Made by a program: the position numbers and the translations under genes. From positions 3,782,001-3,846,000 of the forward strand of contig CP075493.1 in assembly GCA_021613535.1 (NCBI GenBank): a DNA stretch of 64,000 bases, in the 5' to 3' direction. How positions within the stretch are numbered: the stretch's first letter is position 1; every line of letters begins with the position of its first letter. The DNA comes from Adineta vaga. Lineage: Eukaryota; Animalia; Rotifera. Under the pieces are notes generated by a model. It was not told the origin of the DNA. It did not search any database and saw only the letters and a program-made list of their open reading frames with translations. Positions 15,143 to 42,453 of this stretch are shown here, in pieces.

Positions 15143-15919
15143 CTATGCTGAAACCCAAGTTTTATTAACACATTTTTTGTTTGTTTTCGTTAAAGATCCT
15201 TTTCCATATAATTTGGTCACTATATTTTCAGGTTTTGCAGGACACCAGACTAGGATATTGCTGAAATTACATGGCTGTAATGGAAAAGTCCATTCGACGG
15301 GTGAAGTAATCCATCTATATGATGCATCATACTCGGTTAACGTTGTGGTAACATTTGTTTTCTTTCTGGATTGATTTGGGTTAAAGTCATATATAGGCCA
15401 AATATCAACATGATAACGAAGTTTTCGATGTACAAATCGAGCATTTGGTGCTATAAAGTTAAAGCCTTGTTTTGGATAATAAGAACGTTTAGCATATCCA
15501 ACAAACGACCATTGTGGATGAACTTTTAATTCATAGATCAATGAGAAATTCTTATCTGCAAATGGAACAAGATATTGTGTATCTTGTGCTAACATTAGTA
15601 TGTCCGTATCTCCATCATGAGGTAATAGACCACCACGTTGCATATAACCAACAAGTGATCCATAGGCGATCCAATATTGTATGTTATGTTCATGAGCAAA
15701 CTGTGTCCATGCATAAAGTGTAGTGAGTAAAACTTGTTGTCGAGATCGATCATTTAAATTACATATTGGTGTTTGTTCTAATGCATCAGCAATTGAATTA
15801 TTAATATTCACAATAACATAATTTGATGTCATACTACTTTTACAATAGTAAACACCAATACAGAATGTAAAAAATAATAAAGCTATACATAGGTGACATG
15901 AAGAGGTTTTTGAATACAT
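15143..15919 (-). CDS. LicD/fukutin-family nucleotidyl/phosphotransferase 1 (intronless, N-terminal anchor)
   Basis: YWIAYGSLVGYMQRGGLLPHDGDTDI motif, HVDIWP, WTFPLQPC.F...WCP. Confidence 0.88.
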   Translation of the reverse strand: MYSKTSSCHLCIALLFFTFCIGVYYCKSSMTSNYVIVNINNSIADALEQTPICNLNDRSRQQVLLTTLYAWTQFAHEHNIQYWIAYGSLVGYMQRGGLLPHDGDTDILMLAQDTQYLVPFADKNFSLIYELKVHPQWSFVGYAKRSYYPKQGFNFIAPNARFVHRKLRYHVDIWPIYDFNPNQSRKKTNVTTTLTEYDASYRWITSPVEWTFPLQPCNFSNILVWCPAKPENIVTKLYGKGSLTKTNKKCVNKTWVSA

Positions 15920-16990: not shown

Positions 16991-17764
16991 TTAAACATCA
17001 ACCCATGATCCATCCTTACATATGTGATCACTTTGATTGACTGCTTGACTTCCATACAAGAGAGAAACGATTTTTTCTGGCATGGCTGGACACCATGTTT
17101 TCAATTGACTAAATAAACATGGTTTTAATGGGAATGTCCATTCAATTGGATACGATGCCCAAGCATAGTCAATAGAATATTGAAAAAGTGTTTTTCCACG
17201 AAGTGTTGTATTTGTTGGTTGATCGGGATGAAAATCATATATCGGCCAAATATCTACATGTCTATTATCTTCAAGATTATAAACACGTGCATTAGGTGCC
17301 ACGAAAGTGATACCTTGTGATTCGAAATAGGAACGATTTTTTTCTCCAATAATCTCCCATTGTGGATGTACTCTCAATTGATAGATTGATGAGAAATTAA
17401 CGTATGTCAATGACGCTAGACGTTTTGTATCTGAATGGAGCATTAAAACATCAACATCTGAATCATGTGGTATTAAGCCACGAAGTCTTGTATAACCAAC
17501 AAGTGATCCATCACATAACCAATATCTCAAATTATGTTCATGAGCAAATTGAGTCCAGGCATAAAACATTCGAAGTAAAGACCGTTGTCGATCACGATCA
17601 CCTGATTCACAAACTGGAATAGTTTCTAAAGTATTTTCAATTGAAATATTTGCCATTGGAAAAACATGTAATCCATTATCCGTATTATGAAAATAGTAGA
17701 GAAACATTATTCCAAAGAATAATAATAAAAGCTTAAGATAATTTCGTGAAAGTAAACTGATCAT
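16991..17764 (-). CDS. LicD-family protein 2 (tandem paralog of 15143-15919)
   Basis: YWLCDGSLVGYTRLRGLIPHDSDVDV, HVDIWP. Collinear with copy 1 and nearly the same length (257 vs 258 aa). Confidence 0.88.
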   Translation of the reverse strand: MISLLSRNYLKLLLLFFGIMFLYYFHNTDNGLHVFPMANISIENTLETIPVCESGDRDRQRSLLRMFYAWTQFAHEHNLRYWLCDGSLVGYTRLRGLIPHDSDVDVLMLHSDTKRLASLTYVNFSSIYQLRVHPQWEIIGEKNRSYFESQGITFVAPNARVYNLEDNRHVDIWPIYDFHPDQPTNTTLRGKTLFQYSIDYAWASYPIEWTFPLKPCLFSQLKTWCPAMPEKIVSLLYGSQAVNQSDHICKDGSWVDV

Positions 17765-18780
17765 GTGTACTATCGTAAGTATTGTGATTATGGGAATAGA
17801 TGGTTTTATTCTGTAATGTTAAGTATGCTTGTTAATTTCTAAAATTATATTAGATGCGATATACACGATGGATATATAATATTTATAATAATAGTCTTTA
17901 TGGCCGTTCTCTTTCTCTTTTTCAGATTTGAAGAACAGATTCCATGAAAAAAAAACAGATGTAAGCATACGTGATGCAATGGATGAGTATTAGAATGCAA
18001 GAAAACATACATGAATGTCATACTATCTGCCTGTGAATTTAAGAGAAATTATTGATGAAAGACACACCACTGACGATATTACGAAATATTTTCATGCATC
18101 CATTCTATCTCTATCAAAGATTTCGAACAATCGTCATATGATACATCTAACTCGAATTAGATATAATCATAATTAAACTAAAAATATCATAAAATTATCT
18201 TCTACTTGTTGATCTTTCTATAAACAAAATGTACATAGAAAATTATAATAATCTAAAAGGTTGATTAGAAACGAATGAAATACGATTCATATTGAATATC
18301 ATGTAACTTCTTTAATGTAGTTTTACTCTTGATATGAAGATGAAAGATATCATAAATTACAAATACTTGTTTTTCTTGTACATCATCTAGTGATACTTTG
18401 AATTTTCTTGAAAAAAGGTCGATTCAACAATTAAAAATATGTTTCAGAGAAATGTATGGCATGTGTTTTTTTAAAGATTTTATCGCCTACAGATGACATA
18501 TTTTGACACAAATCATGGAACTATGTTGAAATAAAATGAATGATAGTTATTTTCGATCCGCACATATTTCATCAGTATGTTCCATATTCACAAAAAAGAG
18601 AGTTATATATAGAGATTCTTTCGCCAAATCATGTGCGGGGGTATACTATCTTCAGAATCAATGAAATATTGTTTTTTCATTAGAATTAAGCATATAAATA
18701 CTTAGCACATTTGCATTAGAAATTCGTCTTTTTTTTCATTAGATAAGATATTGTAGAGAATACACTCTTTATATTTAACA

Positions 18781-21700
18781 ATGTATGTTGAACAACAACA
18801 AGATATTTTAGAACAACCTGAAGACAATCCGCAATCGATACACTCATGGTAAGATGTATTTATCATTGAATTGATTCAATGAAATTTCTCTTCAATTAAT
18901 TATAGGTTTCGAATGCCGAGTATGTTCAGGTCATCAAGAATTAAAATATTTCTCACTATTCTGATGCTAATTTTGATCGTTAGCATCAGTGTTTTATTTG
19001 TTATTTCAAATAATAACAACTCAATTAAAATCATTGAGCATATCAATGAAACAAACGGTAAGTCGAAAAGAGAAAATTCATTTTAATACATTCAGATGAA
19101 GATATTGATCTGTAAACATTTTCGCTTTAACTAAAGAGATAAACAGAAAAATAAATAAACTCTTCTTCTTCAGAGGTTGATTCAATGAATTATTCATTGT
19201 CTAACGAATTCACAGCTACTGAATATCGCAGAAAACGAATACCTCGATCTCGATCATTATCACGAGTATGTTAATTATCATTGTATTGTCTTCTACACAG
19301 TAAGTCTTTTGATTAGGTTAATGAACCAGATGAACAAGGCTATTTTAACGTTTATGTTCGTGATTCATGCCGCGAAATGCCTCGAAATCCATTCAAAGAA
19401 GTTCGTTTTCCCTATGTTCGATATGGTCGTCGCCAATTGGGTAAAAAATTTTATTTATCGTTTTATATAAATATATATACATAATTATCAATATTCTCGA
19501 AAATCTAGTATATTCAAGAACATGGGTTAGATTTTCGCGATTGATGCCTATCTATGTGAATCGAATCAATCGTCATACTATGATCTATACAAAAGATACT
19601 GGTAATATTTTATTCATAACTCATCAATAAAAGACCACAATAATGTTGTTGTTGTTGTTGTTTTTAGTTTATATTTTACCTCCATATATTAATTTTAATA
19701 GAAAACTAATATCGGTTGCTGAATTAATGGCATACGGATATGCATCCATGCTTGAGAGTAGCTCTTTAATGCCATCGCGTTTTAATATTGCATCTTATGC
19801 TCACTCTGGTGCATGTGAGTATCTCGATATTCATTCCTTTTTGAAATAGTTTTTCCGTTCATATAGATTACATGCGAGGCATGCCACGGTTTAATTCTCA
19901 AACACAATCTTTTATGGGTGGAGTCGAAACTAAATCACGCTCAGAATACAATGCAGACTGCGATTATAGTTATGAAGAAAATATTGGCGATGAAGAACCA
20001 ATCTCATATTCCTTAGACAATGATAATAATGCTGACGAAGAAGAACCAATACCTTATTCCAGAGACGATGATAATAATGCAGATGAAGAAGAACCTTCAT
20101 CTTATGAAGAAAATCCAAACTATGAAGACTCATCTTATTATGGATCAAATAAATATGATAAGAAGCCATCTTCATATAGCAGAAACAGACACAAAAGTCC
20201 ACACAGCAAAAACAACTATGATTATAAACCAAGGCGTCGTCCAAGACCATACAAAACAGGTAATTATGATATGTTCTATTCGTATTCTAGAGCAAATACG
20301 AAAAAATACCTAGAGCCCCACGCGAACAAGAATCACAACCCTATACACATCTTGAGAAATAACAAAGAAATCAGATAAACTTCACTTCCAGAACTACTGA
20401 ATGTGTTCAACAATCTAACGAATTAATGACTTTTCTACCAACACCACAGAAACTCTCAAAACAAATCGAAACACGAATGCTCCCATTCGTCCCACGCTCA
20501 AAGTCAACAGTTCAATCAAACTAATCCCTTCTTGAAGTCACAAAGCGAACAGTATCATTTACAAACATAAACGGAAAAACACAGTCATAAAACAAATAAT
20601 GAAAATATTCGAAATCCATGAGAAAGCACATACTAAACGAAAATCTAGGTACTCATATACAACAAACCGATTATTCCCAAAAGAACAGATAGTTATCAGA
20701 CATATTCATTACAGCCAATTATATCTCAATAGAAGCTAAAAACCATTACAACCCAAACAATTACTTTTTCCTTCCTTCGACGTATGAAACGCATCCGCAA
20801 GTATCAAACAAACATGTACGATAATAAGCCATACCCCACCTGCGAATAACAACTAATCAATACATTGAGATAAAACTCTAAAATACTACTTCATTCTAGC
20901 TACCACTACCACCACGACCATATCTACTACCACAACCACAAAAACAACCACTTCCAAAATCAGGACAATCCCACCAACCACATCAACCAAACGCGTGAGT
21001 AAACCTCAGTCTACCGCTACGCAACCAACACCAACTCATCCAATAACAGCACATCCAACAAGTGCGGAAACAACCAAAAAACAAACGACTACAACAGAAC
21101 ATACTAGTACTCAACCAACAGGAACCCAACCCACTGGAACTAAACCAGCCGGTACTCAACCAACAGGAACCCAACCCACTGGAACTAAACCAGCCGGTAC
21201 TCAACCAACAGGAACACAACCAACGGGAACACAACCTACTGGAACTAAACCAGCCGGTACTCAACCAACAGGAACACAACCAACAGGAACTCAACCAACA
21301 GGTACTCAACCAACAGGAACACAACCTACTGGAACTAAACCAGCCGGTACTCAACCAACAGGTACTCAACCAACAGGAACACAACCTACTGGAACTAAAC
21401 CAGCCGGTACCCAACCAACAGGAATTCAACCAACAGGAACTCAACCAACAGGTACTCAACCAACAGGAACACAACCTACTGGAACTAAACCAGCCGGTAC
21501 TCAACCAACAGGAACTCAACCAACAGGAACACAACCTACTGGAACTAAACCAGCCGGTACTCAACCAACAGGAACACAACCTACTGGAACTAAACCAACA
21601 GGAACTAAACCAGCCGGTACTCAACCAACAGGCACTCAACCAACAGGAACACAACCTACTGGAACTAAACCAGCCGGTACTCAACCAACAGGAACTCAAC

Positions 21701-24700
21701 CAACAGGAACACAACCTACTGGAACTAAACCAGCCGGTACTCAACCAACAGGAACTCAACCAACAGGAACTCAACCAACAGGTACTCAACCAACAGGAAC
21801 ACAACCTACTGGAACTAAACCAGCCGGTACTCAACCAACAGGAACTCAACCAACAGGAACTCAACCAACAGGTACTCAACCAACAGGAACACAACCTACT
21901 GGAACTAAACCAGCCGGTACTCAACCAACAGGTACTCAACCAACAGGAACACAACCTACTGGAACTAAACCAGCCGGTACCCAACCAACAGGAACTCAAC
22001 CAACAGGAACTCAACCAACAGGTACTCAACCAACAGGAACACAACCTACTGGAACTAAACCAGCCGGTACTCAACCAACAGGAACACAACCCACTGGAAC
22101 TAAACCAGCCGGTACTCAACCAACAGGAACTAAACCAGCCGGTACTCAACCAACAGGCACTCAACCAACAGGAACACAACCTACTGGAACTAAACCAGCC
22201 GGTACTCAACCAACAGGCACTCAACCAACAGGAACACAACCTACTGGAACTAAACAAGCCGGTACTCAACCAACAGGATCACAACCTACTGGAACTAAAC
22301 CAGCCGGTACTCAACCAACAGGAACTCAACCAACAGGAACTCAACCAACAGGTACTCAACCAACAGGAACACAACCTACTGGAACTAAACCAGCCGGTAC
22401 TAAACCAACAGGAACACAACCTACTGGAACTAAACCAGCCGGTACTCAACCAACAGGAACTCAACCAACAGGAACTCAACCAACAGGTACTCAACCAACA
22501 GGAACGCAACCTACTGGAACTAAACCAGCCGGTACTCAACCAACAGGTACTCAACCAACAGGAACACAACCTACTGGAACTAAACCAGCCGGTACTCAAC
22601 CAACAGGAACTCAACCAACAGGAACACAACCTACTGGAACTAAACCAGCCGGTACTCAACCAACAGGAACTCAACCAACAGGTACTCAACCAACAGGAAC
22701 ACAACCTACTGGAACTAAACCAGCCGGTACTAAACCAACAGGAACACAACCTACTGGAACTAAACCAGCCGGTACTCAACCAACAGGAACTCAACCAACA
22801 GGAACTCAACCAACAGGTACTCAACCAACAGGAACGCAACCTACTGGAACTAAACCAGCCGGTACTCAACCAACAGGTACTCAACCAACAGGAACACAAC
22901 CAGCCGGTACTCAACCAACAGGAACTCAACCAACAGGTACTCAACCAACAGGAACACAACCTACTGGAACTAAACCAGCCGGTACTAAACCAACAGGAAC
23001 ACAACCTACTGGAACTAAACCAGCCGGTACTCAACCAACAGGAACTCAACCAACAGGAACTCAACCAACAGGTACTCAACCAACAGGAACGCAACCTACT
23101 GGAACTAAACCAGCCGGTACTCAACCAACAGGCACTCAACCAACAGGAACACAACCTACTGGAACTAAACCAGCCGGTACTCAACCAACAGGAACTCAAC
23201 CAACAGGAACACAACCTACTGGAACTAAACCAGCCGGTACTAAACCAACAGGAACACAACCTACTGGAACTAAACCAGCCGGTACTCAACCAACAGGAAC
23301 TCAACCAACAGGAACTCAACCAACAGGTACTCAACCAACAGGAACGCAACCTACTGGAACTAAACCAGCCGGTACTCAACCAACAGGTACTCAACCAACA
23401 GGAACACAACCTACTGGAACTAAACCAGCCGGTACTCAACCAACAGGAACACAACCTACTGGAACTAAACCAGCCGGTACTCAACCAACAGGAACTCAAC
23501 CAACAGGAACACAACCTACTGGAACTAAACCAGCCGGTACTCAACCAACAGGAACACAACCAACAGGAACACAACCTACTGGAACTAAACCAGCCGGTAC
23601 TCAACCAACAGGAACTCAACCAACAGGAACACAACCAACACACAACCTACAGGAACTAAACCAGCCGGTACTCAACCAACAGGAACACAACCTACTGGAA
23701 CTAAACCAGCCGGTACTCAACCAACAGGAACACAACCTACTGGAACTAAACCAGCCGGTACTCAACCAACAGGAACACAACCAACAGGAACACAACCTAC
23801 TGGAACTAAACCAGCCGGTACTCAACCAACAGGAACTCAACCAACAGGAACACAACCCACAGGAACTAAACCAGCCGGTACTCAACCAACAGGAACACAA
23901 CCAACAGGAACTAAACCAGCCGGTACTCAACCAACAGGTACTCAACCAACAGGAACACAACCTACTGGAACTAAACCAGCCGGTACTCAACCAACAGGAA
24001 CACAACCAACTGGAACTAAACCAGCCGGTACTCAACCAACAGGAACTCAACCAACAGGAACACAACCAACTGGAACTAAACCAGCCGGTACTCAACCAAC
24101 AGGAACTCAACCAGCCGGTACTCAACCAACAGGTACTCAACCAACAGGAACACAACCTACTGGAACTAAACCAGCCGGTACTCAACCAACAGGAACACAA
24201 CCAACAGGAACTAAACCAGCCGGTACTCAACCAACAGGAACTCAACCAACAGGAACTCAACCAACAGGTACTCAACCAACAGGAACACAACCTACTGGAA
24301 CTAAACCAGCCGGTACTCAACCAACAGGAACACAACCAACAGGAACACAACCTACTGGAACTAAACCAGCCGGTACTCAACCAACAGGAACTCAACCAAC
24401 AGGAACACAACCCACAGGAACTAAACCAGCCGGTACTCAACCAACAGGAACACAACCAACAGGAACTAAACCAACCGGTACTCAACCAACAGGAACTCAA
24501 CCAACAGGAACACAACCCACCGGAACTAAACCAGCCGGTACTCAACCAACAGGAACTCAACCAGCCGGTACTCAACCAACAGGTACTCAACCAACAGGAA
24601 CACAACCTACTGGAACTAAACCAGCCGGTACTCAACCAACAGGTACTCAACCAACAGGAACACAACCTACAGGAACTAAACCAGCCGGTACTCAACCAAC

Positions 24701-27700
24701 AGGAACACAACCTACTGGAACTAAACCAGCCGGTACTCAACCAACAGGAACTCAACCAACAGGAACACAACCCACTGGAACTAAACCAGCCGGTACTCAA
24801 CCAACAGGAACTCAACCAGCCGGTACTCAACCAACAGGTACTCAACCAACAGGAACACAACCTACTGGAACTAAACCAGCCGGTACTCAACCAACAGGAA
24901 CACAACCAACAGGAACTAAACCAGCCGGTACTCAACCAACAGGAACTCAACCAACAGGAACTCAACCAACAGGTACTCAACCAACAGGAACACAACCTAC
25001 TGGAACTAAACCAGCCGGTACTCAACCAACAGGTACTCAACCAACAGGAACACAACCTACTGGAACTAAACCAGCCGGTACCCAACCAACAGGAACTCAA
25101 CCAACAGGAACACAACCTACTGGAACTAAACAAGCCGGTACTCAACCAACAGGATCACAACCTACTGGAACTAAACCAGCCGGTACTCAACCAACAGGAA
25201 CTCAACCAACAGGTACTCAACCAACAGGAACACAACCAACAGGAACACAACCTACTGGAACTAAACCAGCCGGTACTCAACCAACAGGAACACAACCTAC
25301 TGGAACTAAACCAGCCGGTACTCAACCAACAGGAACACAACCAACAGGAACTCAACCAACAGGTACTCAACCAACAGGAACGCAACCTACTGGAACTAAA
25401 CCAGCCGGTACACAACCAACAGGAACACAACCAACTGCAACTAAACCAGCCGGTACACAACCAACTGGAACACAACCAACTGCAACTAAACCAGCCGGTA
25501 CACAACCAACAGGAACACAACCAACTGCAACAAAACCAGCCGGTACACAACCAACTGGAACACAACCAACTGCAACTAAACCAGCCGGTACACAACCAAC
25601 TGCAACTAGAGCAACCAACCAACTGCAACCAGACCAGCCGGTACACAACCAACAGGAACACAACCAACTGCAACTAAACCAGCCGGTACACAACCAACTG
25701 GAACACAACCAACTGCAACTAGAGCAGCCGGTACACAACCAACTGCAACCAGACCAGCCGGTACACAACCAACAGGAACACAACCGACTGCAACTAAACC
25801 AGCCGGTACACAACCAACAGGAACACAACCAACTGCAACTAAACCAGCCGGTACACAACCAACTGGAACACAACCAACTGCAACAAAACCAGCCGGTACA
25901 CAACCAACTGCAACTAAACCAGCCGGTACACAACCAACAGGAACACAACCAACTGCAACTAAACCAGCCGGTACACAACCAACAGGAACACAACCAACTG
26001 CAACTAAACCAGCCGGTACACAACCAACTGGAACACAACCAACTGCAACTAAACCAGCCGGTACACAACCAACAAACAGCCGTAACACAACAGGACTGCA
26101 ACTAAACCAGCCGGTACACAACCAACAGGAACACAACCAACTGCAACTAAACCCAGCCGGTACACAACCAACAGGAACACAACCAACTGCAACTAAACCA
26201 GCCGGTACACAACCAACAGGAACACAACCAACTGCAACTAAACCAGCCGGTACACAACCAACCACGACTGCAACTAACCACGGTAACCAACCAACCGGTA
26301 CACAACAACAGGCGTAACACACAACCAACCACTGCAACTAAACCAGCCGGTACACAACCAACTGGAACACAACAAACTGCAACTAAACCAGCAGGTACTC
26401 AACCAACTCCAACTAGACCAGCCGGTACACAACCAACAGGAACACAACCGACTGCAACTAAACCAGCCGGTACACAACCAACAGGAACACAACCAACTGC
26501 AACTAAACCAGCCGGTACACAACCAACTGGAACACAACCAACTGCACAACCGACTGCAACTAAACCAGCCGGTACACAACCAACAGGAACACAACCAACT
26601 GCAACTAAACCAGCCGGTACACAACCAACAGGAACACAACCAACTGCAACTAAACCAGCCGGTACACAACCAACAGGAACACCAACAGGAACACAACCAA
26701 CTGCAACTAAACCAGCCGGTACACAACCAACTGGAACACAACCAACTGCAACTAAACCAGCCGGTACACAACCAACAGGAACACAACCAACTGCAACTAA
26801 ACCAGCCGGTACACAACCAACAGGAACACAACCAACTGCAACAAAACCAGCCGGTACACAACCAACAGGAACACAACCAACTGCAACTAAACCAGCCGGT
26901 ACACAACCAACAGGAACACAACCAACTGCAACTAAACCAGCCGGTACACAACCAACAGGAACACAACCAACTGCAACTAAACCAGCCGGTACACAACCAA
27001 CAGGAACACAACCGACTGCAACTAAACCAGCCGGTACTCAACCAACTGGAACACAACCAACTGCAACTAAACCAGCCGGTACACAACCAACAGGTACACA
27101 ACCGACTGCAACTAAACCAGCCGGTACACAACCAACTGCAACTAGAGCAGCCGGTACACAACCAACTGCAACCAGACCAGCCGGTACACAACCAACAGGA
27201 ACACAACCGACTGCAACTAAACCAGCCGGTACACAACCAACTGGAACACAACCAACTGCAACACAACCAACTGCAACAAAACCAGCCGGTACACAACCAA
27301 CAGCAACTAAACCAGCCGGTACACAACCAACAGGAACACAACCAACTGCAACTAAACCAGCCGGTACACAACCAACAGGAACACAACCAACTGCAACTAA
27401 ACCAGCCGGTACACAACCAACTGGAACACAACCAACTGCACTAAACCAGCCGGTACAACAACCAACCGGTACACAACCAACGCAACTAAACCAGCCGGTA
27501 CACAACCAACAGGAACACAACAACTGCAACTAAACCAGCCGGTACAACAACCAACCACAGGAACACAACCAACTGCAACTAAACCAGCCGGTACACAACC
27601 AACGGAACACAACCAACTGCAACTAAACAGCCGGTACACAACCAACAGGAACACAACCAACTGCAACTAAACCAGCCGGTACACAACCAACAGGAACACA

Positions 27701-30700
27701 ACCAACTGCAACTAAACCAGCCGGTACACAACCAACTGGAACACAACCAACTGCAACTAAACCAGCCGGTACACAACCAACAGGAACACAACCAACTGCA
27801 ACTAAACCAGCCGGTACACAACCAACAGGAACACAACCGACTGCAACTAAACCAGCCGGTACACAACCAACAGGAACACAACCAACTGCAACTAAACCAG
27901 CCGGTACACAACCAACAGGAACACAACCAACTGCAACTAAACCAGCCGGTACACAACCAACAGGAACACAACCGACTGCAACTAAACCAGCCGGTACACA
28001 ACCAACAGGAACACAACCAACTGCAACTAAACCAGCCGGTACACAACCAACAGGAACACAACCGACTGCAACTAAACCAGCCGGTACACAACCAACTGCA
28101 ACTAAACCAGCCGGTACACAACCAACTGCAACCAATACCAGCCGGTACACAACCAACAGGAACACAACCGACTGCAACTAAACCAGCCGGTACACAACCA
28201 ACTGGCAACACAACCGACTGCAACTAAACCAGCCGGTACACAACCAACAGCAACTAAACCAGCCGGTACACAACCAACAGGAACACAACCAACTGCAACT
28301 AAACCAGCCGGTACACAACCAACAGGAACACAACCAACTGCAACTAAACCAGCCGGTACAACCAACTGGAACACAACCAACTGGAACACAACCAACTGCA
28401 ACTAAACCAGCCGGTACACAACCAACTGGAACACAACCAACTGCAACTAAACCAGCCGGTACACAACCAACAGGAACACAACCAACTGCAACTAAACCAG
28501 CCGGTACACAACCAACTGGAACACAACCAACTGCAACTAAACCAGCCGGTACACAACCAACTGGAACACAACCAACTGCAACTAAACCAGCCGGTACACA
28601 ACCAACAGGAACACAACCAACTGCAACAAAACCAGCCGGTACACAACCAACAGGAACACAACCAACTGCAACAAAACCAGCCGGTACACAACAACGGAAC
28701 ACAACAACTGCCAACAACCGACCAACAAACCGCCGGTACACAACGGAACTGCAACTAAACCAGCCGGTACACTCACCAACAGGAACACAACACCAACTGC
28801 AACTAAACCAGCCGGTACACAACCAACTGGAACACAACCAACTGCAACTAAACCAGCCGGTACACAACCAACAGGAACACAACCAACTGCAACTAAACCA
28901 GCCGGTACACAACCAACTGGAAACACAACCAACTGCAACTAAACCAGCCGGTACACAACCAACTGGAACACAACCAACTGCAACTAGACCAGCCGGACAC
29001 CAACTGCAACTAGCAGCGCACTCAACAACTACGCAACGAGCCGGTACTCAACCAACTGGATCGCAACCCAATGAAACTATGCCAGCCGGTACCCAACCAC
29101 CTACTACTCAACGAGCCGGTACACTACCTACTGGATCGCAACCTAATGGAACTATGCCAGCCGGCACTCAACCACCTACTACGCAACGAGCCGGTACACT
29201 ACCAACTGGATCGCAACCCAATGGAACTATGCCAGCCGGCACTCAACCACCTACTACTCAACGAGCCGGTACACTACCAACTGGATCGCAACCCAATGGA
29301 ACTATGCCAGCCGGTACCCAACCACCTACTACTCAACGAGCCGGTACACTACCAACTGGATCGCAACCCAATGGAACTATGCCAGCCGGTACCCAACCAC
29401 CTACTACTCAACGAGCCGGTACTCAACCAACTGGATCGCAACCCAATGAAACTATGCCAGCCGGTACCCAACCACCTACTACTCAACGAGCCGGTACACT
29501 ACCAACTGGATCGCAACCCAATGGAACTATGCCAGCCGGCACTCAACCACCTACTACGCAACGAGCCGGTACACTACCAACTGGATCGGAACCCAATGGA
29601 ACTATGCCAGCCGGCACTCAACCACCTACTACGCAACGAGCCGGTACTCAACCAACTGGATCGCAACCCAATGGAACTATGCCAGCCGGCACTCAACCAC
29701 CTACTACGCAACGAGCCGGTACTCAACCAACTGGATCGCAACCAATGGAACTATGCCAGCTGGTACCCAACCAACTGCAACTAAACCAGCCGGTACACAA
29801 CCAACAGGAACACAACCAACTGCAACAAAACCAGCCGGTACACAACCAACAGGAACACAACCAACTGCAACTAAACCAGCCGGTACACAACCAACAGGAA
29901 CACAACCAACTGCAACTAAACCAGCCGGTACACAACCAACAGGAACACAACCGACTGCAACTAAACCAGCCGGTACTCAACCAACAGGAACACAACCAAC
30001 TGCAACTAAACCAGCCGGTACACAACCAACTGGAACACAACCAACTGCAACTAAACCAGCCGGTACACAACCAACAGGTACACAACCGACTGCAACTAAA
30101 CCAGCCGGTACACAACCAACTGCAACTAGAGCAGCCGGTACACAACCAACTGCAACCAGACCAGCCGGTACACAACCAACAGGAACACAACCGACTGCAA
30201 CTAAACCAGCCGGTACACAACCAACTGGAACACAACCAACTGCAACACAACCGACTGCAACTAAACCAGCCGGTACACAACCAACAGCAACTAAACCAGC
30301 CGGTACACAACCAACAGGAACACAACCAACTGCAACTAAACCAGCCGGTACACAACCAACAGGAACACAACCAACTGCAACTAAACCAGCCGGTACACAA
30401 CCAACTGGAACACAACCAACTGCAACACAACCGACTGCAACTAAACCAGCCGGTACACAACCAACAGCAACTAAACCAGCCGGTACACAACCAACAGGAA
30501 CACAACCAACTGCAACTAAACCAGCCGGTACACAACCAACAGGAACACAACCAACTGCAACAAAACCAGCCGGTACACAACCAACAGGAACACAACCAAC
30601 TGCAACTAAACCAGCCGGTACACAACCAACAGGAACACAACCAACTGCAACTAAACCAGCCGGTACACAACCAACTGGAACACAACCAACTGCAACTAAA

Positions 30701-33700
30701 CCAGCCGGTACACAACCAACAGGAACACAACCAACTGCAACTAAACCAGCCGGTACACAACCAACAGGAACACAACCAACTGCAACAAAACCAGCCGGTA
30801 CACAACCAACAGGAACACAACCAACTGCAACTAAACCAGCCGGTACACAACCAACAGGAACACAACCAACTGCAACTAAACCAGCCGGTACACAACCAAC
30901 AGGAACACAACCGACTGCAACTAAACCAGCCGGTACTCAACCAACAGGAACACAACCAACTGCAACTAAACCAGCCGGTACACAACCAACAGGTACACAA
31001 CCGACTGCAACTAAACCAGCCGGTACACAACCAACTGCAACTAGAGCAGCCGGTACACAACCAACTGCAACCAGACCAGCCGGTACACAACCAACAGGAA
31101 CACAACCGACTGCAACTAAACCAGCCGGTACACAACCAACTGGAACACAACCAACTGCAACACAACCGACTGCAACTAAACCAGCCGGTACACAACCAAC
31201 AGCAACTAAACCAGCCGGTACACAACCAACAGGAACACAACCAACTGCAACTAAACCAGCCGGTACACAACCAACAGGAACACAACCAACTGCAACTAAA
31301 CCAGCCGGTACACAACCAACTGGAACACAACCAACTGCAACACAACCGACTGCAACTAAACCAGCCGGTACACAACCGACTGCAACTAAACCAGCCGGTA
31401 CTCAACCAACAGGAACACAACCAACAGCAACTAAACCAGCCGGTACACAACCAACAGGAACACAACCAACTGCAACTAAACCAGCCGGTACACAACCAAC
31501 TGGAACACAACCAACAGGAACACAACCAACTGCAACTAAACCAGCCGGTACACAACCAACTGGAACACAACCAACTGCAACTAAACCAGCCGGTACACAA
31601 CCAACTGGAACACAACCAACTGCAACTAAACCAGCCGGTACACAACCAACAGGAACACAACCAACTGCAACAAAACCAGCCGGTACACAACCAACTGGAA
31701 CACAACCAACTGCAACTAAACCAGCCGGTACACAACCAACAGGAACACAACCAACTGCAACTAAACCAGCCGGTACACAACCAACAGGAACACAACCAAC
31801 TGGAACAAAACCAGCCGGTACACAACCAACTGGAACACAACCAACTGCAACACAACCGACTGCAACTAAACCAGCCGGTACACAACCGACTGCAACTAAA
31901 CCAGCCGGTACTCAACCAACAGGAACACAACCAACAGCAACTAAACCAGCCGGTACACAACCAACAGGAACACAACCAACTGCAACTAAACCAGCCGGTA
32001 CACAACCAACTGGAACACAACCAACAGGAACACAACCAACTGCAACTAAACCAGCCGGTACACAACCAACTGGAACACAACCAACTGCAACTAAACCAGC
32101 CGGTACACAACCAACTGGAACACAACCAACTGCAACTAGACCAGCCGGTACACAACCAACTGCAACTATGCCAGCCGGCACTCAACCACCTACTACGCAA
32201 CGAGCCGGTACTCAACCAACTGGATCGCAACCCAATGAAACTATGCCAGCCGGTACCCAACCACCTACTACTCAACGAGCCGGTACACTACCTACTGGAT
32301 CGCAACCTAATGGAACTATGCCAGCCGGCACTCAACCACCTACTACGCAACGAGCCGGTACACTACCAACTGGATCGCAACCCAATGGAACTATGCCAGC
32401 CGGCACTCAACCACCTACTACTCAACGAGCCGGTACACTACCAACTGGATCGCAACCCAATGGAACTATGCCAGCCGGTACCCAACCACCTACTACTCAA
32501 CGAGCCGGTACACTACCAACTGGATCGCAACCCAATGGAACTATGCCAGCCGGTACCCAACCACCTACTACTCAACGAGCCGGTACTCAACCAACTGGAT
32601 CGCAACCCAATGAAACTATGCCAGCCGGTACCCAACCACCTACTACTCAACGAGCCGGTACACTACCAACTGGATCGCAACCTAATGGAACTATGCCAGC
32701 CGGCACTCAACCACCTACTACGCAACGAGCCGGTACACTACCAACTGGATCGGAACCCAATGGAACTATGCCAGCCGGCACTCAACCACCTACTACGCAA
32801 CGAGCCGGTACTCAACCAACTGGATCGCAACCCAATGGAACTATGCCAGCCGGCACTCAACCACCTACTACGCAACGAGCCGGTACTCAACCAACTGGAT
32901 CGCAACCCAATGGAACTATGCCAGCTGGTACCCAACCAACTGCAACTAAACCAGCCGGTACACAACCAACAGGAACACAACCAACTGCAACAAAACCAGC
33001 CGGTACACAACCAACAGGAACACAACCAACTGCAACTAAACCAGCCGGTACACAACCAACAGGAACACAACCAACTGCAACTAAACCAGCCGGTACACAA
33101 CCAACAGGAACACAACCAACTGCAACTAAACCAGCCGGTACTCAACCAACAGGAACACAACCAACTGCAACTAAACCAGCCGGTACACAACCAACTGGAA
33201 CACAACCAACTGCAACTAAACCAGCCGGTACACAACCAACAGGTACACAACCGACTGCAACTAAACCAGCCGGTACACAACCAACTGCAACTAGAGCAGC
33301 CGGTACACAACCAACTGCAACCAGACCAGCCGGTACACAACCAACAGGAACACAACCGACTGCAACTAAACCAGCCGGTACACAACCAACTGGAACACAA
33401 CCAACTGCAACACAACCGACTGCAACTAAACCAGCCGGTACACAACCAACAGCAACTAAACCAGCCGGTACACAACCAACAGGAACACAACCAACTGCAA
33501 CCAAACCAGCCGGTACACAACCAACAGGAACACAACCAACTGCAACTAAACCAGCCGGTACACAACCAACTGGAACACAACCAACTGCAACACAACCGAC
33601 TGCAACTAAACCAGCCGGTACACAACCAACAGCAACTAAACCAGCCGGTACACAACCAACAGGAACACAACCAACTGCAACTAAACCAGCCGGTACACAA

Positions 33701-36700
33701 CCAACAGGAACACAACCAACTGCAACAAAACCAGCCGGTACACAACCAACAGGAACACAACCAACTGCAACTAAACCAGCCGGTACACAACCAACAGGAA
33801 CACAACCAACTGCAACTAAACCAGCCGGTACACAACCAACTGGAACACAACCAACTGCAACTAAACCAGCCGGTACACAACCAACAGGAACACAACCAAC
33901 TGCAACTAAACCAGCCGGTACACAACCAACAGGAACACAACCAACTGCAACAAAACCAGCCGGAACACAACCAACTGCAACTAAACCAGCCGGTACACAA
34001 CCAACAGGAACACAACCAACTGCAACTAAACCAGCCGGTACACAACCAACAGGAACACAACCGACTGCAACTAAACCAGCCGGTACTCAACCAACAGGAA
34101 CACAACCAACTGCAACTAAACCAGCCGGTACACAACCAACAGGTACACAACCGACTGCAACTAAACCAGCCGGTACACAACCAACTGCAACTAGAGCAGC
34201 CGGTACACGACCAGCCGGTACACAACCAACAGGAACACAACCGACTGCAACTAAACCAGCCGGTACACAACCAACTGGAACACAACCAACTGCAACACAA
34301 CCGACTGCAACTAAACCAGCCGGTACACAACCAACAGCAACTAAACCAGCCGGTACACAACCAACAGGAACACAACCAACTGCAACTAAACCAGCCGGTA
34401 CACAACCAACAGGAACACAACCAACTGCAACTAAACCAGCCGGTACACAACCAACTGGAACACAACCAACTGCAACACAACCGACTGCAACTAAACCAGC
34501 CGGTACACAACCGACTGCAACTAAACCAGCCGGTACTCAACCAACAGGAACACAACCAACAGCAACTAAACCAGCCGGTACACAACCAACAGGAACACAA
34601 CCAACTGCAACTAAACCAGCCGGTACACAACCAACTGGAACACAACCAACAGGAACACAACCAACTGCAACTAAACCAGCCGGTACACAACCAACTGGAA
34701 CACAACCAACTGCAACTAAACCAGCCGGTACACAACCAACTGGAACACAACCAACTGCAACTAAACCAGCCGGTACACAACCAACAGGAACACAACCAAC
34801 TGCAACAAAACCAGCCGGTACACAACCAACTGGAACACAACCAACTGCAACTAAACCAGCCGGTACACAACCAACAGGAACACAACCAACTGCAACTAAA
34901 CCAGCCGGTACACAACCAACAGGAACACAACCAACTGCAACAAAACCAGCCGGTACACAACCAACTGGAACACAACCAACTGCAACACAACCGACTGCAA
35001 CTAAACCAGCCGGTACACAACCGACTGCAACTAAACCAGCCGGTACTCAACCAACAGGAACACAACCAACAGCAACTAAACCAGCCGGTACACAACCAAC
35101 AGGAACACAACCAACTGCAACTCAACCAGCCGGTACACAACCAACTGGAACACAACCAACAGGAACACAACCAACTGCAACTAAACCAGCCGGTACACAA
35201 CCAACTGGAACACAACCAACTGCAACTAAACCAGCCGGTACACAACCAACTGGAACACAACCAACTGCAACTAGACCAGCCGGTACACAACCAACTGCAA
35301 CTATGCCAGCCGGCACTCAACCACCTACTACGCAACGAGCCGGTACTCAACCAACTGGATCGCAACCCAATGAAACTATGCCAGCCGGTACCCAACCACC
35401 TACTACTCAACGAGCCGGTACACTACCTACTGGATCGCAACCTAATGGAACTATGCCAGCCGGCACTCAACCACCTACTACGCAACGAGCCGGTACACTA
35501 CCAACTGGATCGCAACCCAATGGAACTATGCCAGCCGGCACTCAACCACCTACTACTCAACGAGCCGGTACACTACCAACTGGATCGCAACCCAATGGAA
35601 CTATGCCAGCCGGTACCCAACCACCTACTACTCAACGAGCCGGTACACTACCAACTGGATCGCAACCCAATGGAACTATGCCAGCCGGTACCCAACCACC
35701 TACTACTCAACGAGCCGGTACTCAACCAACTGGATCGCAACCCAATGAAACTATGCCAGCCGGTACCCAACCACCTACTACTCAACGAGCCGGTACACTA
35801 CCAACTGGATCGCAACCTAATGGAACTATGCCAGCCGGCACTCAACCACCTACTACGCAACGAGCCGGTACACTACCAACTGGATCGGAACCCAATGGAA
35901 CTATGCCAGCCGGCACTCAACCACCTACTACGCAACGAGCCGGTACTCAACCAACTGGATCGCAACCCAATGGAACTATGCCAGCCGGCACTCAACCACC
36001 TACTACGCAACGAGCCGGTACTCAACCAACTGGATCGCAACCCAATGGAACTATGCCAGCTGGTACCCAACCAACTGCAACTAAACCAGCCGGTACTCAA
36101 CCAACTGGATCGCAACCTAATGGAACTATGCCAGCCGGCACTCAACCACCTACTACTCAACGAGCCGGTACACTACCAACTGGATCGCAACCTAATGGAA
36201 CTATGCCAGCCGGCACTCAACCACCTACTACTCAACGAGCTGGTACACTACCAACTGGATCGCAACCCAATGGAACTATGCCAGCCGGTACCCAACCACC
36301 TACTACTCAACGGGCCGGTACTCAACCAACTGGATCGCAACCCAATGGAACTATGCCAGCTGGTACCCAACCAACTGCAACTAAACCAGCCGGTACTCAA
36401 CCAACTGGATCGCAACCTAATGGAACTATGCCAGCCGGCACTCAACCACCTACTACTCAACGAGCCGGTACACTACCAACTGGATCGCAACCTAATGGAA
36501 CTATGCCAGCCGGCACTCAACCACCTACTACTCAACGAGCCGGTACACTACCAACTGGATCGCAACCCAATGGAACTATGCCAGCCGGTACCCAACCACC
36601 TACTACTCAACGAGCCGGTACACTACCAACTGGATCGCAACCCAATGGAACTATGCCAGCCGGTACCCAACCACCTACTACTCAACGAGACGGTACACTA

Positions 36701-38296
36701 CCAACTGGATCGCAACCCAATGGAACTATGCCAGCCGGTACCCAACCACCTACTACTCAACGAGCCGGTACACTACCAACTGGATCGCAACCCAATGGAA
36801 CTATGCCAGCCGGTACCCAACCACCTACTACTCAACGAGCCGGTACACTACCAACTGGATCGCAACCCAATGGAACTATGCCAGCCGGTACCCAACCACC
36901 TACTACTCAACGAGCCGGTACACTACCAACTGGATCGCAACCCAATGGAACTATGCCAGCCGGTACCCAACCACCTACTACTCAACGAGACGGTACACTA
37001 CCAACTGGATCGCAACCCAATGAAACTATGCCAGCCGGTACCCAACCACCTACTACTCAACGGGCCGGTACTCAACCAACTGGATCGCAACCCAATGGAA
37101 CTATGCCAACCGGTACCCAACCACCTACTACTCAACGAGCCGGTACTCAACCAACTGGATCGCAACCCAATGGAACTATGCCAGCCGGTACCCTACCACC
37201 TAGTACTCAACCAGCCGGTACACAACCAACTGGATCGCAACCCAATGGAACTATGCCAGCCGGTACCCTACCACCTAGTACTCAACCAGCCGGTACACAA
37301 CCAACTGGTACTCAGTCGATAATAACACAATCCACATGGAGTATTCCTTTGGGAACTGAATCGGTGGCATCAAATTTGAGTACGATTGTTACGACGAAGC
37401 CGGCGACGGGCTCCTGTGGAGCGGTTTGCGAACCGTTTGGGGCTCTGAAATATTTGAATCAATATAATATTATTACTTTGGGAGATCTTTATACGTCTTC
37501 GGAAGTGGAGTATCGATCACTGATTTGCGGTCGTCTGGCTAGTACTGATGCAGCGAATTTTGGTGTTCACATAAGTGTATTGCGTCCGAGTCCTTTGGTG
37601 CCGGTTTTGGAAATTGCGAAGTCGAACATCGCAGGTGGTGATATCAGTGTAGAAGTGGGTAGTGTAGCTATTGGCCATTCTTCAGATATTATTGTTCGTC
37701 TTGGAAATGTTGGTTACACTGTCAATGGACGAAGATTCAATGTGAATGGTGGGAATGATGGTGCAACTTTGTTTTATGATTCACAATTAGTGAATAAATG
37801 TGAATGTATATCAAATGATTTGAAAGGTCTTTCCTTAAGGTTGTCGAACGAAACTGCGAATAATAATATTGTTATTCCTACTGCTTCGCCTGGGCCGCTA
37901 AATGTTAATATAAATACAAAAGATTCTGTGGGATTTGCTTTTGTAACTGTTGCTGATGGTAATTCAATCTTTAGTAATGACAACATGCAACAGTTTGAAA
38001 TAAGGAATAACATTGGCGCAACTTGGATTATCTTTAATATTGGTGGTACGTCAATTCGATTCAATAAAGGAAACATTGTTGGAGATTTAGTTCAAAATGA
38101 TTTACGATCACGGGTTTTATTCAATTTTTATGCAGCTACATCAATAAAAATGGAAAGAAATTTTATGGGTGCACTTTTAGCGCCATTTGCAACGGTGGAA
38201 ACAACTGTCCAAATCGATGGAGCAACTGCTGTTGGATCATTGAAAACAAACGCTGAATTACATAAGCCGCTGTATATTGCGCCACCATGTGCTTAA
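18781..38296 (+). CDS. Giant mucin-like adhesin candidate (~6,100 aa). Exons 18781-18848, 18906-19057, 19174-19265, 19317-19440, 19509-19601, 19668-19814, 19867-20259, 20900-38296.
   Basis: All seven introns are GT-AG with matching phases and lead into the T/P-rich frame at 20900. TM segment IFLTILMLILIVSISVLFVI, RRKR site, repeat stalk, C-terminal globular domain, AATAAA at 38454. Frameshifts between ~23640 and ~29750 are probably assembly errors. Confidence 0.8.
21105..37312 (+). repeat. Coding tandem array built from 15-nt units (GTQPT, GTKPA, ATKPA) and a derived 75-nt unit (MPAGTQPPTTQRAGTLPTGSQPNGT), with ~3 kb higher-order repeats
   Basis: Directly visible. 75-nt blocks at ~29030-29750, ~32165-32920 and ~35300-37310. 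Confidence 0.98.
37420..38296 (+). other. Choice-of-anchor A-like (ice-binding-like adhesive) domain at the C-terminus of the giant protein
   Basis: YNIITLGDL..SSEVEYR near the start, WIIFNIGG internally, and VLFNFYAATSI...FMGALLAPFATV...IDG...GSL...ELH.PLY at the end. These match my recollection of the bacterial choice-of-anchor A pattern. Confidence 0.72.
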
Positions 38297-40324
38297 TAGT
38301 GTATACATCTAGTACTGCATTATAACTAATACAAGGATTAACAGTCTTCTGCTTTTGAAATGTTTTTCAAACAACTTTTTTCTTTATCTAGCATTTTTTA
38401 TAAGTTTAACGGTAAAGTACGAAAATTTCAAATCTGAGTACTTTAGCAACCTGAATAAAGGTGATATATAGTATTTTAAATGCGTGCTTTGTTCGTTTTT
38501 TTTATGTTGAATAAATAATAATCGTTAATCCTTGTTAGCAGTAACATCTTCTCATGTTTCTTACATTTCAATTTCTTGATACAGATTTTTATGATGTAAT
38601 TTGTGTCGAATGAAATATTTGTTGGCATTCGAATTAAATAAGATAGAAATATTTCGTTAAGATGTTTCGTTCAAGTCTTTGAATATAGTCATGTTATTTT
38701 GGTTTTGATCCTGTTAATCACTGTATACACAGTTTTGTACATGTTGCTTCTAGAATATTCATGTATGATGAATTCAAAATATGTTCTGATGCTTGGATTG
38801 CTGCATACAGATGCCAAGTAGTTATACGTGATTTGATGCATATGATGTTTCATGGTCTAGAGAAGATATATGCTTGGTTTAGTAGAAAATGCTGATGGTG
38901 ATATATTGCCCTCAGCATTCGATAAAATATGTTTGTTGTTTATATCAAATTAAGTTAACTTAATTATCGTTTTTGTTTTATTAGATCTTGACTGTAACTT
39001 ATTTGAAATTAAACAAGCTATGAATGAATGGAATAATCTAATGGAAAGGACGATAGAAATAGTTATATTTGATATATTAGCATTTGCTAATCGATTCGCT
39101 TTAAGATTGAAACTAATTCTGGATAAATATATGGTTGAATCTGAATTGTGTTCTCTACAGACGGACAAATATTTTATACTCATTGATCTCGACGATCGTC
39201 ACAAACATGACGGAGAGCAATAGTTTATAGTCAAATCAAATAGAATTGCAACAAATAATTATTTTAAGTTAATTGTGTGGTAAATTAAAGAGACACCCAG
39301 ACATATAATAAAAACTTAAAAGACTTTTGGTATTGATTTCATTGATAATAAAAATCAGTGTCGCTTCGTATTTACATTTCAATTGCATATAAATAGTACT
39401 AATAGTTTTTTTAAGTAATCAATATTCTTTCATATCTATTTTGAATTATCACGATTTTTATATAAATAAAAAGCATAAAAATAACACGATCGTTATAGTA
39501 ACAAGAATTTAGTTAAATCTATTAGACACTGATGTTCTCAGAAAAGAACTTAGCGGTGTTAAAACAGTGAAAATGATGTGCAGGAATAGCAATGCTTACA
39601 TTATCATTACCTGAACGGTTTAATGTAATATGTGAATTCTTCATATAATTTGTCGATGGAGTTGTACTTCGATAGATTAAATTAACCAGATGTTTTGACT
39701 GTGCTGAATGCCATACTTTTATACCAGTAAGAGCATATAGTTCTAATTGAAACATCTATTCTATCAGAACTGATATCCTAAGGTAAGCGAATTCTTATCT
39801 TCAGATACAATGTAATGATAATTATGAATGTATTTTCAATATGTAGTCCTCATTTTTCGATTAGACTAACTGATCTCCTCTCTTACATTTTGAAATTTTT
39901 TTCGGAACGTGTCCGATAAAAATCGATTCATACGATCATCGGCTACTACATACGTAAATAACCATGCTAATAATGAACAAAAATATTTCAGTTTAAGATT
40001 ACTCTGAATTTAAACGCTATTTTCAAAAACTTAGAAGGATATGTCATAAACGACTTCCAAAAGTAGAAAATATCTGTTTGATGTTTTTTCTCATTATGTT
40101 TTAGGTTTTCATATAAATTGAGTTTATTTAGCATTATAAATGCAATAATGTATTAAAAATATGTTATATTGCGGTTTTATTAATAAATTTGAATCGCATA
40201 CGTTCTAGTCTGTACACGATTGAGTAATTGGATTATGACTAGAAGAGAAATTTTATATATTTTGTGTATACGTCGTCATCTTGACACACTAGAAGCTACC
40301 ATATGGAAGCAGTATTATAGTAAG

Positions 40325-41419: not shown

Positions 41420-42453
41420 TCAATTGTATAAAATTGTATGAATAATGGTATTGTTTATTTTTAAAACTTCAGTCGACATTGTTTCATTATTTTGTTCAAC
41501 AAATGGATAGAATTCTTTCAGCTCATTACATTTACATGTAATAACATCCTGGCCTGTTTCATTGTGATGATCCCACCAATGGGTTTTACATTCATCAAAT
41601 AGATCAAAATCATGCAATTGTCTTGATTGTTTTGGTGCAGGTAACCATAGTTCTCCAAGTGGTCTCAGTACTAACGGATAATAATATTCGATTTGTTGAC
41701 CTTCCTCAGGTTCGCCCATTTTCCAGACATGTGTTTCATTTTTAAGATATACAAAGATATCAAGAAATGGAAAATTCCACGAATAACCTCCAGCTGTTGG
41801 TGTACTTCGAAAGCAAATCTTGTAATATACTTTTTTTCCATCATCGTAGTCTATAATACGATAAGTTACGAGAGTATCATTCATCCGATTAACTTCATCA
41901 AGAAAACGATCTTTGCCCTCATAGCTATCATCATATCAGCATCCGTATCCCATGGAATCACATCATGATGTCTTAAAGATCCTAGCAGTGTTCCATCCGC
42001 TATCATGTATTCGATTTTATTCTTTCGACAAATACGATCAGCAATCATGAATAGTCGCATAACTATACTGTGTTGACATGGTGTGAAACGACGAGGAAGA
42101 AGTGGTGTTGATTTCCACTGTGAATAATAATAAGGTAGACGACGAAGTCTTGTAAAATCGAATGTCGGTGCATGGAAAACATTTGATTGAAAAAGTTGCT
42201 CATCTGTATCGAAACGATACGCCATATTGAGACACCATATAGAAAAATCATCTAATGATGTTGATTGATCTTCTGTATTATTCAATTCTCGACCAAATTT
42301 GTCTGATTTAAACGAAATGTTGGAAACACTAAATGATGAATGTCTCATATGAATAAATGATTCAAGACATTTTATAATCACTAAAACAAAGATCAATGTA
42401 ATTATTACTGATACATGTCTATTTCGACGTATTGAGAATCGTTTTAATACCAT
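41420..42453 (-). pseudogene. LicD-family protein 3 with a 1-nt frameshift near 41923 (pseudogene or sequence error)
   Basis: GTLLGSLRHHDVIPWDTDADM motif. Offset to the paralog changes from 1482 to 1483 at this point, and restoring one base joins ORFs 41881-42513 and 41420-41884. Confidence 0.75.

Follow-up and report, generated by a model that had tools for sequence, protein, structure and literature searches.

Among animals that have acquired genes on a massive scale, bdelloid rotifers are the standard example. The 64,000-nucleotide stretch of an Adineta vaga chromosome analysed here (the window; G000:C1:3782001-3846000, within a 100.8-Mb genome in 6 pieces) raises the question of whether a microbial surface-binding domain can end up as the tip of a giant animal mucin. 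A preliminary description, made from the sequence, had read positions 18781 to 38296 of the window as an adhesin gene with a spliced, animal-type amino-terminus, a mucin stalk and a bacterial-type choice-of-anchor A (CAA) tip. We conclude that this part of a bdelloid-rotifer chromosome holds a real gene of eight exons, which is transcribed. Its reality is supported by consistent exon phases, four spliced junctions, a full CAA match, a structural model resembling the IBP-1 fold of ice-binding proteins, and metazoan neighbours. We consider it probable, with a rough probability of 0.6, that the product is an extracellular mucin, membrane-anchored or released by furin, whose CAA tip binds polysaccharide or a surface.

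An eight-exon gene with a predicted amino-terminal anchor

Exon models were rebuilt from the sequence by means of splice sites and phase arithmetic. In the resulting eight-exon model phases are consistent at every junction and all seven introns are GT..AG, with lengths, in order, of 57, 116, 51, 68, 66, 52 and 640 nt; the seven small, phase-consistent exons originally proposed between 18781 and 20259 are thereby upheld. The features of the gene, in window positions, are as follows.

18781-18848, + strand: exon 1 (predicted), start codon and acidic amino-terminal tail (cytoplasmic), ending in phase 2 at donor GTAAGA
18906-19057, + strand: exon 2 (predicted), translated as basic residues, then a hydrophobic span, then the Asn-rich beginning of the ectodomain
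19174-19265, + strand: exon 3 (predicted), whose translation has an RRKR furin-type dibasic motif, a putative cleavage site, at 19227-19238
19317-19440, + strand: exon 4, juxtamembrane region with no known domain; an RNA-type contig of run X1 covers 19329-19440 and joins 19509
19509-19601, + strand: exon 5, in X1 contig record 1
19668-19814, + strand: exon 6, in X1 contig records 1 and 2, with a GT..AG joint 19814/19867
19867-20259, + strand: exon 7, acidic Tyr-rich segment and then a basic Pro/Arg-rich end, in RNA-type contigs of runs X1, X2 and X3
20260-20899, + strand: intron 7, 640 nt, splice sites GTAATT..TTCTAG, skipped by one X1 contig
20900-38296, + strand: exon 8, in which a Thr-rich lead-in is followed by the pentapeptide repeat, the CAA domain and the stop codon, in a frame that is interrupted as assembled
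21109-37314, + strand: tandem array of a 15-bp unit, ~1,081 copies (TQPTG/TKPAG/TQPTA), found by Tandem Repeats Finder (TRF)
23629-29750, + strand: noisy stretch holding all of the ~14 repeat-frame changes on the frame map, probable long-read consensus errors
37457-38269, + strand: CAA (pAdhesive_15) domain, beta-solenoid with flanking helix, from profile matches and an AlphaFold2 model
38454-38459 and 38510-38515, + strand: two AATAAA hexamers, candidate poly(A) signals read from the sequence 160-220 nt past the stop

The hydrophobic span of exon 2, a signal anchor or transmembrane segment at 18946-19002, reaches a mean Kyte-Doolittle value of 3.12 in its best 19-residue window. Together with the tail of exon 1 it reads as a signal anchor, which would leave the remainder of the protein extracellular (type II topology). 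The layout of anchor, stalk and tip that had been proposed is present in order: transmembrane span, RRKR, Tyr-rich exon 7, repeat and terminal CAA domain.

In order to follow splicing, contigs of sequencing runs X1-X3 (listed as 'RNA?') and X4 (DNA) were placed on 18600-21250. The three 'RNA?' runs contain just the exonic portion of the 5' region, and DNA run X4 is colinear with the locus, introns kept. In X1, cDNA-type contigs skip four introns (19441-19508, 19602-19667, 19815-19866 and 20260-20899); the second of these skips aligned as 19610/19677 with 2 mismatches, exactly as the canonical junction 19601/19668 predicts. The key junction foreseen in the preliminary description, 20259/20900, is crossed by one X1 contig with flanks of 42 nt and 152 nt and GT..AG sites with cut +2. 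Short-read contigs end at the edge of the array. An apparent short-read 'frameshift' at 21245, where DNA run X4 has a loose end, proved to be a variant of the unit that keeps the frame, and was rejected as such.

Intron 7 is far longer than the other six (51-116 nt) and has a strong A-over-T and C-over-G skew, like the repeat-bearing exon 8 next to it; possibly it was once repeat or coding sequence and has since degenerated.

The term 'animal-type' suits the amino-terminus in so far as its introns are spliceosomal; it finds no counterpart in Pfam, where exons 2-7, each searched singly, matched no family, although a domain split across exons could be missed in this way. The same single-exon searches gave no match to a SEA domain with type I anchor or to VWD-C8-TIL modules, and the anchor is amino-terminal. 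Exon 7 has no paralog in the genome, and a homolog search elsewhere found none, a weak blank from a protein search that sees only proteins 0.55-1.75 times the query length.

A terminal domain with the choice-of-anchor A fold

What stands at the far end of the protein? The last ~290 residues had been assigned to the CAA family, and this assignment is borne out by two full-length profile matches: TIGR04215 at 98.8 bits (cut-off 29) over model positions 1-251 of 255, and PF20597 (pAdhesive_15) at 97.1 bits (cut-off 23.8) over positions 3-253 of 254. The 287-residue domain is stop-free and keeps all invariant columns of the family alignment. In bacteria, CAA domains occur together with a carboxy-terminal sorting signal of LPXTG, PEP-CTERM or type IX kind (bioRxiv 10.1101/2023.03.06.531300). 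No such context is present here: the protein terminates 8 residues past the domain, and its sole hydrophobic anchor is amino-terminal. The difference lies in the surroundings of the bacterial domains and does not touch the domain as such.

An AlphaFold2 model built from a 17-sequence alignment (pLDDT 90.7, pTM 0.90) shows a beta-solenoid; residues 119-138 form its one long helix, set among the strands. The first 31 matches found for it in the PDB by Foldseek are all DUF3494-type ice-binding proteins, those of the IBP-1 fold, and VIA-align superimposed it on IBP-1 structures with Z 15-16.3 and a root-mean-square deviation of 2.9-3.3 A over 184-203 aligned residues. The pilus protein ComZ, from a thermophile, reaches Z 15, after which matches fall to Z 8. 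The suspected kinship of fold with DUF3494 proteins is thus well founded, with Z about 16. Identity to solved ice-binding proteins is 8-15%, and a Pfam scan of the domain at E<=1 returned PF20597 as the sole match, with no DUF3494 (PF11999). Structural look-alikes in the ESM Atlas belong to the same family, mostly in bacterial clusters.

Origin and spread of the domain

An exhaustive HMMER search of 1.84 billion representatives yielded 410 proteins at E<=0.001. The closest named homologs are from the bdelloids Adineta ricciae, A. steineri and Didymodactylos carnosus; the others that could be named come from Chloroflexota metagenome-assembled genomes (MAGs; 42% identity), from Caldilineaceae, from Colwellia, from an unclassified bacterial MAG and from Phaeodactylum, a diatom. 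Identity to the domain rises to 46-47% in unnamed proteins of bacterial appearance. Of the bacterial homologs, P0007 and the named MAG protein P0009 carry the CAA domain ahead of SpaA/SdrD_B stalk domains.

An IQ-TREE analysis of 79 domains separates the ten rows that are named bdelloids from all named bacteria (Chloroflexota, Colwellia) and the diatom by a branch whose SH-aLRT support is 96%, which agrees with the microbial affinity claimed for the domain. Chloroflexota and Phaeodactylum are the nearest named outgroups of the bdelloid clade. Two cysteines follow the same division: Cys32 is present in 47 of the 49 bdelloid-side rows and Cys123 in all 49, and both are absent from the 30 rows outside. 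As a clade marker this pair fits adaptation to the eukaryotic secretory pathway. The domain would then descend from a microbial gene acquired before the sampled bdelloids diverged, would later have gained the clade-specific cysteine pair, and would afterwards have been shuffled into several mucin-like proteins.

Bdelloids in three genera, Rotaria, Adineta and Didymodactylos, have been reported to have acquired type-2 CAA domains of diatoms (Zackova Suchanova et al., bioRxiv 10.1101/2023.03.06.531300). Among the nameable rows here, three cluster look-ups and two further protein searches included, no type-2 diatom was found; these added look-ups gave only bdelloids, Phaeodactylum and bacterial MAGs. 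A set of metagenome homologs with 53-56% identity (P0158-P0168) was considered as diatom and excluded, these being rotifer genes by their neighbours: the genes beside them can be aligned with this genome, one exon after another, at 57-67% identity. One of these homologs is from activated sludge at 32-34% guanine plus cytosine (GC).

A profile scan found four CAA copies in the genome, all adjoining Thr-rich linkers. In the closest paralog (C1:11.79 Mb, 63% identical) the domain is amino-terminal, after a signal peptide, with a TEPTTT repeat behind it. Two tandem copies lie on piece C6 within a multi-module Thr-rich gene. This C6 pair (L006, G000:C6:5686000-5695999, - strand) stands among at least four unannotated modules of ~180 residues with Thr-rich linkers, and related modules lie on either side of the CAA genes in three contigs from environmental rotifers (L008, L009 and L015). 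On two contigs from a bioreactor metagenome with metazoan-type neighbours (L019:4360-11979 and L020:1798-8499), VWD-C8-TIL-VWD-TIL-LDLa modules lead directly into Thr-rich linkers and two CAA domains; a foreign CAA domain sits there within the classical architecture of an animal gel-forming mucin of von Willebrand factor (VWF) type. In L009:10966-17125 and L015:12873-18598 the CAA gene is followed by at least 10 near-identical tandem open reading frames (ORFs) of 172-219 residues, which recur about every 667-740 bp and each consist of a Thr/Pro-rich lead and a small module bounded by Cys; they are probably parts of one giant multi-exon mucin-like gene.

Because the architectures around CAA are so varied in paralogs and environmental rotifer homologs, the domain appears to have been shuffled into several mucin-type proteins. 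The further proposal that a foreign domain was grafted onto a host stalk is no more than plausible for this gene, because T/P-rich linkers adjoin CAA in every paralog and also in one bacterial-looking homolog.

The repeat array and its interrupted frame

Can so long a repeat be read through to the domain? The repeat frame comprises 5,316 residues (T 32%, P 20%, G 15%, Q 14%, A 10%, K 4.5% and Ser 1%), in keeping with the more than 5,000 residues of T/P/Q/G repeat first described, and by TRF and composition it is a PTS-type (proline, threonine, serine) tandem repeat of the kind found in metazoan mucins. Elsewhere in the genome the TQPTG repeat is essentially absent, and the same type of pentapeptide repeat begins after the splice acceptor at 20900. 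Higher-order periods are 45, 135 and 225 bp and about 3 kb. In the clean part of the array, 29000-37300, the ~3-kb period comes with GC peaks near 29, 32 and 35 kb, and a second repeat type, GTMPAGTQPPTTQRAGTLPTGSQPN, occurs in blocks alternating with the TQPTATKPAG type, a pattern that suggests large duplications within the array in recent times.

Splicing into a ~17.4-kb exon at 20900-38296, as originally envisaged, stands, but the single ORF once attributed to this exon had to be dismissed for the sequence as assembled. Its open stretches are 20869-25677 in frame 1 and 29450-38296 in frame 2; the repeat itself is in frame 1 over 20900-23629, changes frame ~14 times until 29750, and runs in frame 2 from there to the stop, so that 8.8 kb of repeat lead in a single frame directly into the CAA domain. 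The summed model of 18,463 nt leaves a remainder of 1 when divided by 3.

All of the frame changes fall within 6.1 of the 16.4 kb, a clustering with P of about 1e-6. When 3.35 kb of noisy and 3.4 kb of clean array were each aligned to one 45-nt unit, the noisy segment showed 34 out-of-frame gaps, mostly of 1-2 nt, and the clean segment 0, its gaps being whole units only (15 or 30 nt). Mismatches amounted to 18-25 per kb in the noisy array as against about 40 per kb in the clean array. Several sites in the noisy stretch are locally garbled, as is typical of a poorly polished long-read consensus. Because the lesions are small indels only, carry no excess of substitutions and are confined to one stretch, the frame changes at 23.6-29.75 kb are, on this comparison of the sequence, most likely errors of assembly (long-read consensus) and not decay.

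The alternative, that this is a decaying or truncated gene, takes the frameshifts as real: the product would consist of the anchor, ~900 in-frame repeat residues and an out-of-frame tail to 25677, and the CAA domain would go untranslated. The ~14 frame changes with at least 34 small out-of-frame gaps, the model length indivisible by 3, the low RNA depth and the longer end branch of this copy of the domain in the tree would all be expected of such a gene. Nevertheless, neutral decay should raise substitutions, which are not raised here, and it should not spare the domain, which has no stop and intact invariant columns, or the 8.8 kb of repeat and domain that share one frame; nor does it account for frame changes packed into one stretch. 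With noise that is indel-only and so confined, we judge true pseudogene decay unlikely. On this reading, giant repeat genes in this chromosome-level assembly carry uncorrected indels, and automated annotation would split or drop such genes.

Genomic neighbourhood

The DNA flanking the gene has 28-32% GC. Its neighbours include a kinase gene similar to diacylglycerol kinase theta (DGK-theta), an Srg-like receptor, an S-adenosylmethionine (AdoMet) methyltransferase, an MBOAT_2 gene and several LicD-family genes, the last two kinds being located as follows.

15143-15916, 16991-17761, 41420-42513 and 42902-43960, - strand: profile matches to the LicD family (PF04991; fukutin / phosphocholine-transferase-like)
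44233-45222, - strand: MBOAT_2 (membrane-bound O-acyltransferase) ORF, directly past the downstream LicD genes

At least four of the at least 19 LicD-family matches of the genome thus lie within 5 kb either side of the mucin gene. They could form a glycan-modifying cluster tied to the mucin, or a tandem LicD cluster that the mucin has split.

Discussion

The intended product, on the reading that we favour, would have ~6,150 residues: a short cytoplasmic tail, an amino-terminal signal-anchor, RRKR and a small region without known domains, and thereafter the acidic Tyr-rich segment, the ~5,300-residue TQPTG/TKPAG repeat and the carboxy-terminal CAA beta-solenoid. The repeat, predicted to be densely O-glycosylated, may extend over the order of a micrometre and would keep the CAA domain far from the membrane, while a furin cut at RRKR would free the whole ectodomain as a secreted thread. 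The tip would bind polysaccharide or a surface, and the protein would act as an adhesive or lectin-tipped mucin in a glue, mucus coat or matrix. An adhesive or lectin function is suggested by analogy, because Trailins occur in diatom trails, Jonah lectin binds cellulose, bacterial relatives carry SpaA/SdrD_B stalks and environmental homologs have VWD-C8-TIL-LDLa modules.

Several results weigh against this picture of an intact adhesive mucin. Although four of the seven proposed junctions are seen spliced, exons 1-3 have no RNA cover in the placed runs; RNA support is confined to exons 4-7 and the start of exon 8, with none for the 3' domain, and its depth on the confirmed exons is low (3-5). 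For the amino-terminal exons no homolog was found in Pfam, in the genome or by protein search. As assembled, translation of exon 8 ends at 25677, with the CAA domain in another frame. No read or contig spans the array, so that it is the assembly that joins the 5' exons to the domain. Finally, the end branch of the window domain (0.43) is longer than that of the paralog, which could mean relaxed constraint.

A more specific version, which we hold only tentatively and on balance doubt, is that the protein is a micrometre-long, furin-released, O-glycosylated thread serving with its horizontally acquired CAA lectin tip as pedal-gland cement or anchoring mucus. If true, it would be an independent rebuild of the design of diatom Trailins and bacterial fibrillar adhesins with inverted polarity, the anchor being amino-terminal and the tip carboxy-terminal.

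The same protein might instead be a barrier or matrix mucin, in a protective glycocalyx or a mucus layer, against desiccation or for lubrication, with a CAA tip that cross-links other glycans and not external substrata. The present data fit this and an adhesive role alike: the composition is mucin-like, environmental rotifer homologs fuse CAA to the gel-forming modules VWD-C8-TIL, at least four LicD-family genes flank the gene, and the CAA lectin Jonah builds a wall (PMC6541295). CAA proteins of diatoms, however, are in adhesive trails and not in the biofilm matrix (bioRxiv 10.1101/2023.03.06.531300), and we regard the barrier or matrix reading as quite unlikely.

An assembly chimera, in which the array has been collapsed or mis-joined so that the 5' exons and the CAA-ending ORF stem from two genes or alleles, is improbable. 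Poor consensus quality in the middle of the array, the lack of a spanning read and the breaking of short-read contigs at the array's edge are all as a chimera would have it; nevertheless both ends enter one and the same pentapeptide repeat, which agrees in strand and composition skew at either end and is virtually unique to the locus in the genome, and there is neither an alternative start or acceptor candidate for the 3' ORF nor a stop-free alternative end for the 5' part. Least probable of all is an ice-binding or cryoprotective surface coat with the beta-solenoid tip on ice crystals, a role first listed among the candidates: bdelloids do tolerate freezing (PMC11912409) and the top structural matches are all DUF3494 ice-binding proteins, but the domain matches no DUF3494 profile and is scarcely identical in sequence to the solved structures, ComZ of a thermophile fits it equally well, a CAA domain examined in the Trailin study showed no ice-binding motifs or ordered surface carbons (bioRxiv 10.1101/2023.03.06.531300), and bdelloids possess DUF3494 genes of their own apart from this one (A. 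vaga has four), for one of which ice-binding activity has been measured (PMC11912409).

Comparison with known systems

DUF3494 proteins are nonetheless the closest relatives in fold, sharing with the domain a right-handed beta-solenoid that is discontinuous and flanked by an alpha-helix (IBP-1, Z about 16), although they are a different sequence family. Rotifer DUF3494 genes, which are horizontally acquired, are described as intronless (PMC11912409), whereas this gene has seven introns, all upstream of its domain.

The Jonah lectins of Acanthamoeba, cyst-wall proteins that have CAA domains and bind cellulose, stand alone among the CAA proteins found here in having a ligand that was measured. 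They too are secreted by a eukaryote and contain either one CAA domain or three, along with spacers rich in Thr/Ser/Pro, but they are small (44-146 kDa) and have no giant repeat (PMC6541295).

With bacterial fibrillar adhesins (P0007, P0009 and the Chloroflexia MAG L010) the rotifer protein shares the logic of anchor, stalk and tip and a tip family at 42-47% identity. Those adhesins have folded stalks of SpaA/SdrD_B type, an amino-terminal tip and carboxy-terminal sorting-signal anchors; the rotifer gene has a disordered mucin-repeat stalk, a carboxy-terminal tip and a transmembrane helix as its amino-terminal anchor. Monzon and Bateman have reportedly described bacterial fibrillar adhesins with pAdhesive_15 tips.

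Other bdelloid CAA proteins in UniProt (A. ricciae, A. steineri, D. carnosus and the paralogs) have Cys32/Cys123 and Thr-rich linkers in common with it. It differs from the closest paralog and from A. ricciae P0002, in which the domain comes first, after a signal peptide, and the Thr-rich repeat behind, in that the order is reversed, the repeat has ~5,300 residues and the anchor is amino-terminal.

A close likeness in design is also seen in the Trailins, giant PTS-rich CAA proteins of diatom adhesive trail material, among them CaTrailin4 of 894 kDa (bioRxiv 10.1101/2023.03.06.531300). What marks a Trailin, a CAA domain with a very large Pro/Thr-rich repeat in a secreted protein, is found here as CAA domain, 5,316 repeat residues and signal-anchor. 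Like CaTrailin4 of Craspedostauros australis, the predicted rotifer protein is an extracellular eukaryotic giant with huge, presumably O-glycosylated Pro/Thr-rich repeats and a CAA domain of foreign origin; in both, the CAA fold resembles ice-binding proteins and ComZ, and the long repetitive genes are resolvable with long reads only. In Trailins the signal peptide is cleavable and a membrane anchor is absent, whereas the rotifer gene encodes an amino-terminal signal-anchor and RRKR; its repeat is of Thr/Pro/Gly/Gln with just 1% Ser, its host is an animal, and it is compared through its CAA domain as a protein known from sequence, while localisation of the Trailins is experimental.

A literature search found no description of this giant gene, but CAA domains in bdelloids and giant adhesives combining CAA with PTS-rich repeats were already known, and the idea is not new in kind. 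The locus presents a foreign surface-binding domain that is fully domesticated: seven introns lie upstream, a disulfide-type pair of cysteines has been newly gained, and the domain occurs in several mucin-like architectures, this very large one included. Should the protein be a component of glue or coat, it would offer a molecular entry into rotifer attachment and would be a third independent use of the tip-on-stalk design, after bacteria and diatoms. What is new here is an animal version of the CAA-plus-PTS adhesives, type-II-anchored and with its tip at the carboxy-terminus.

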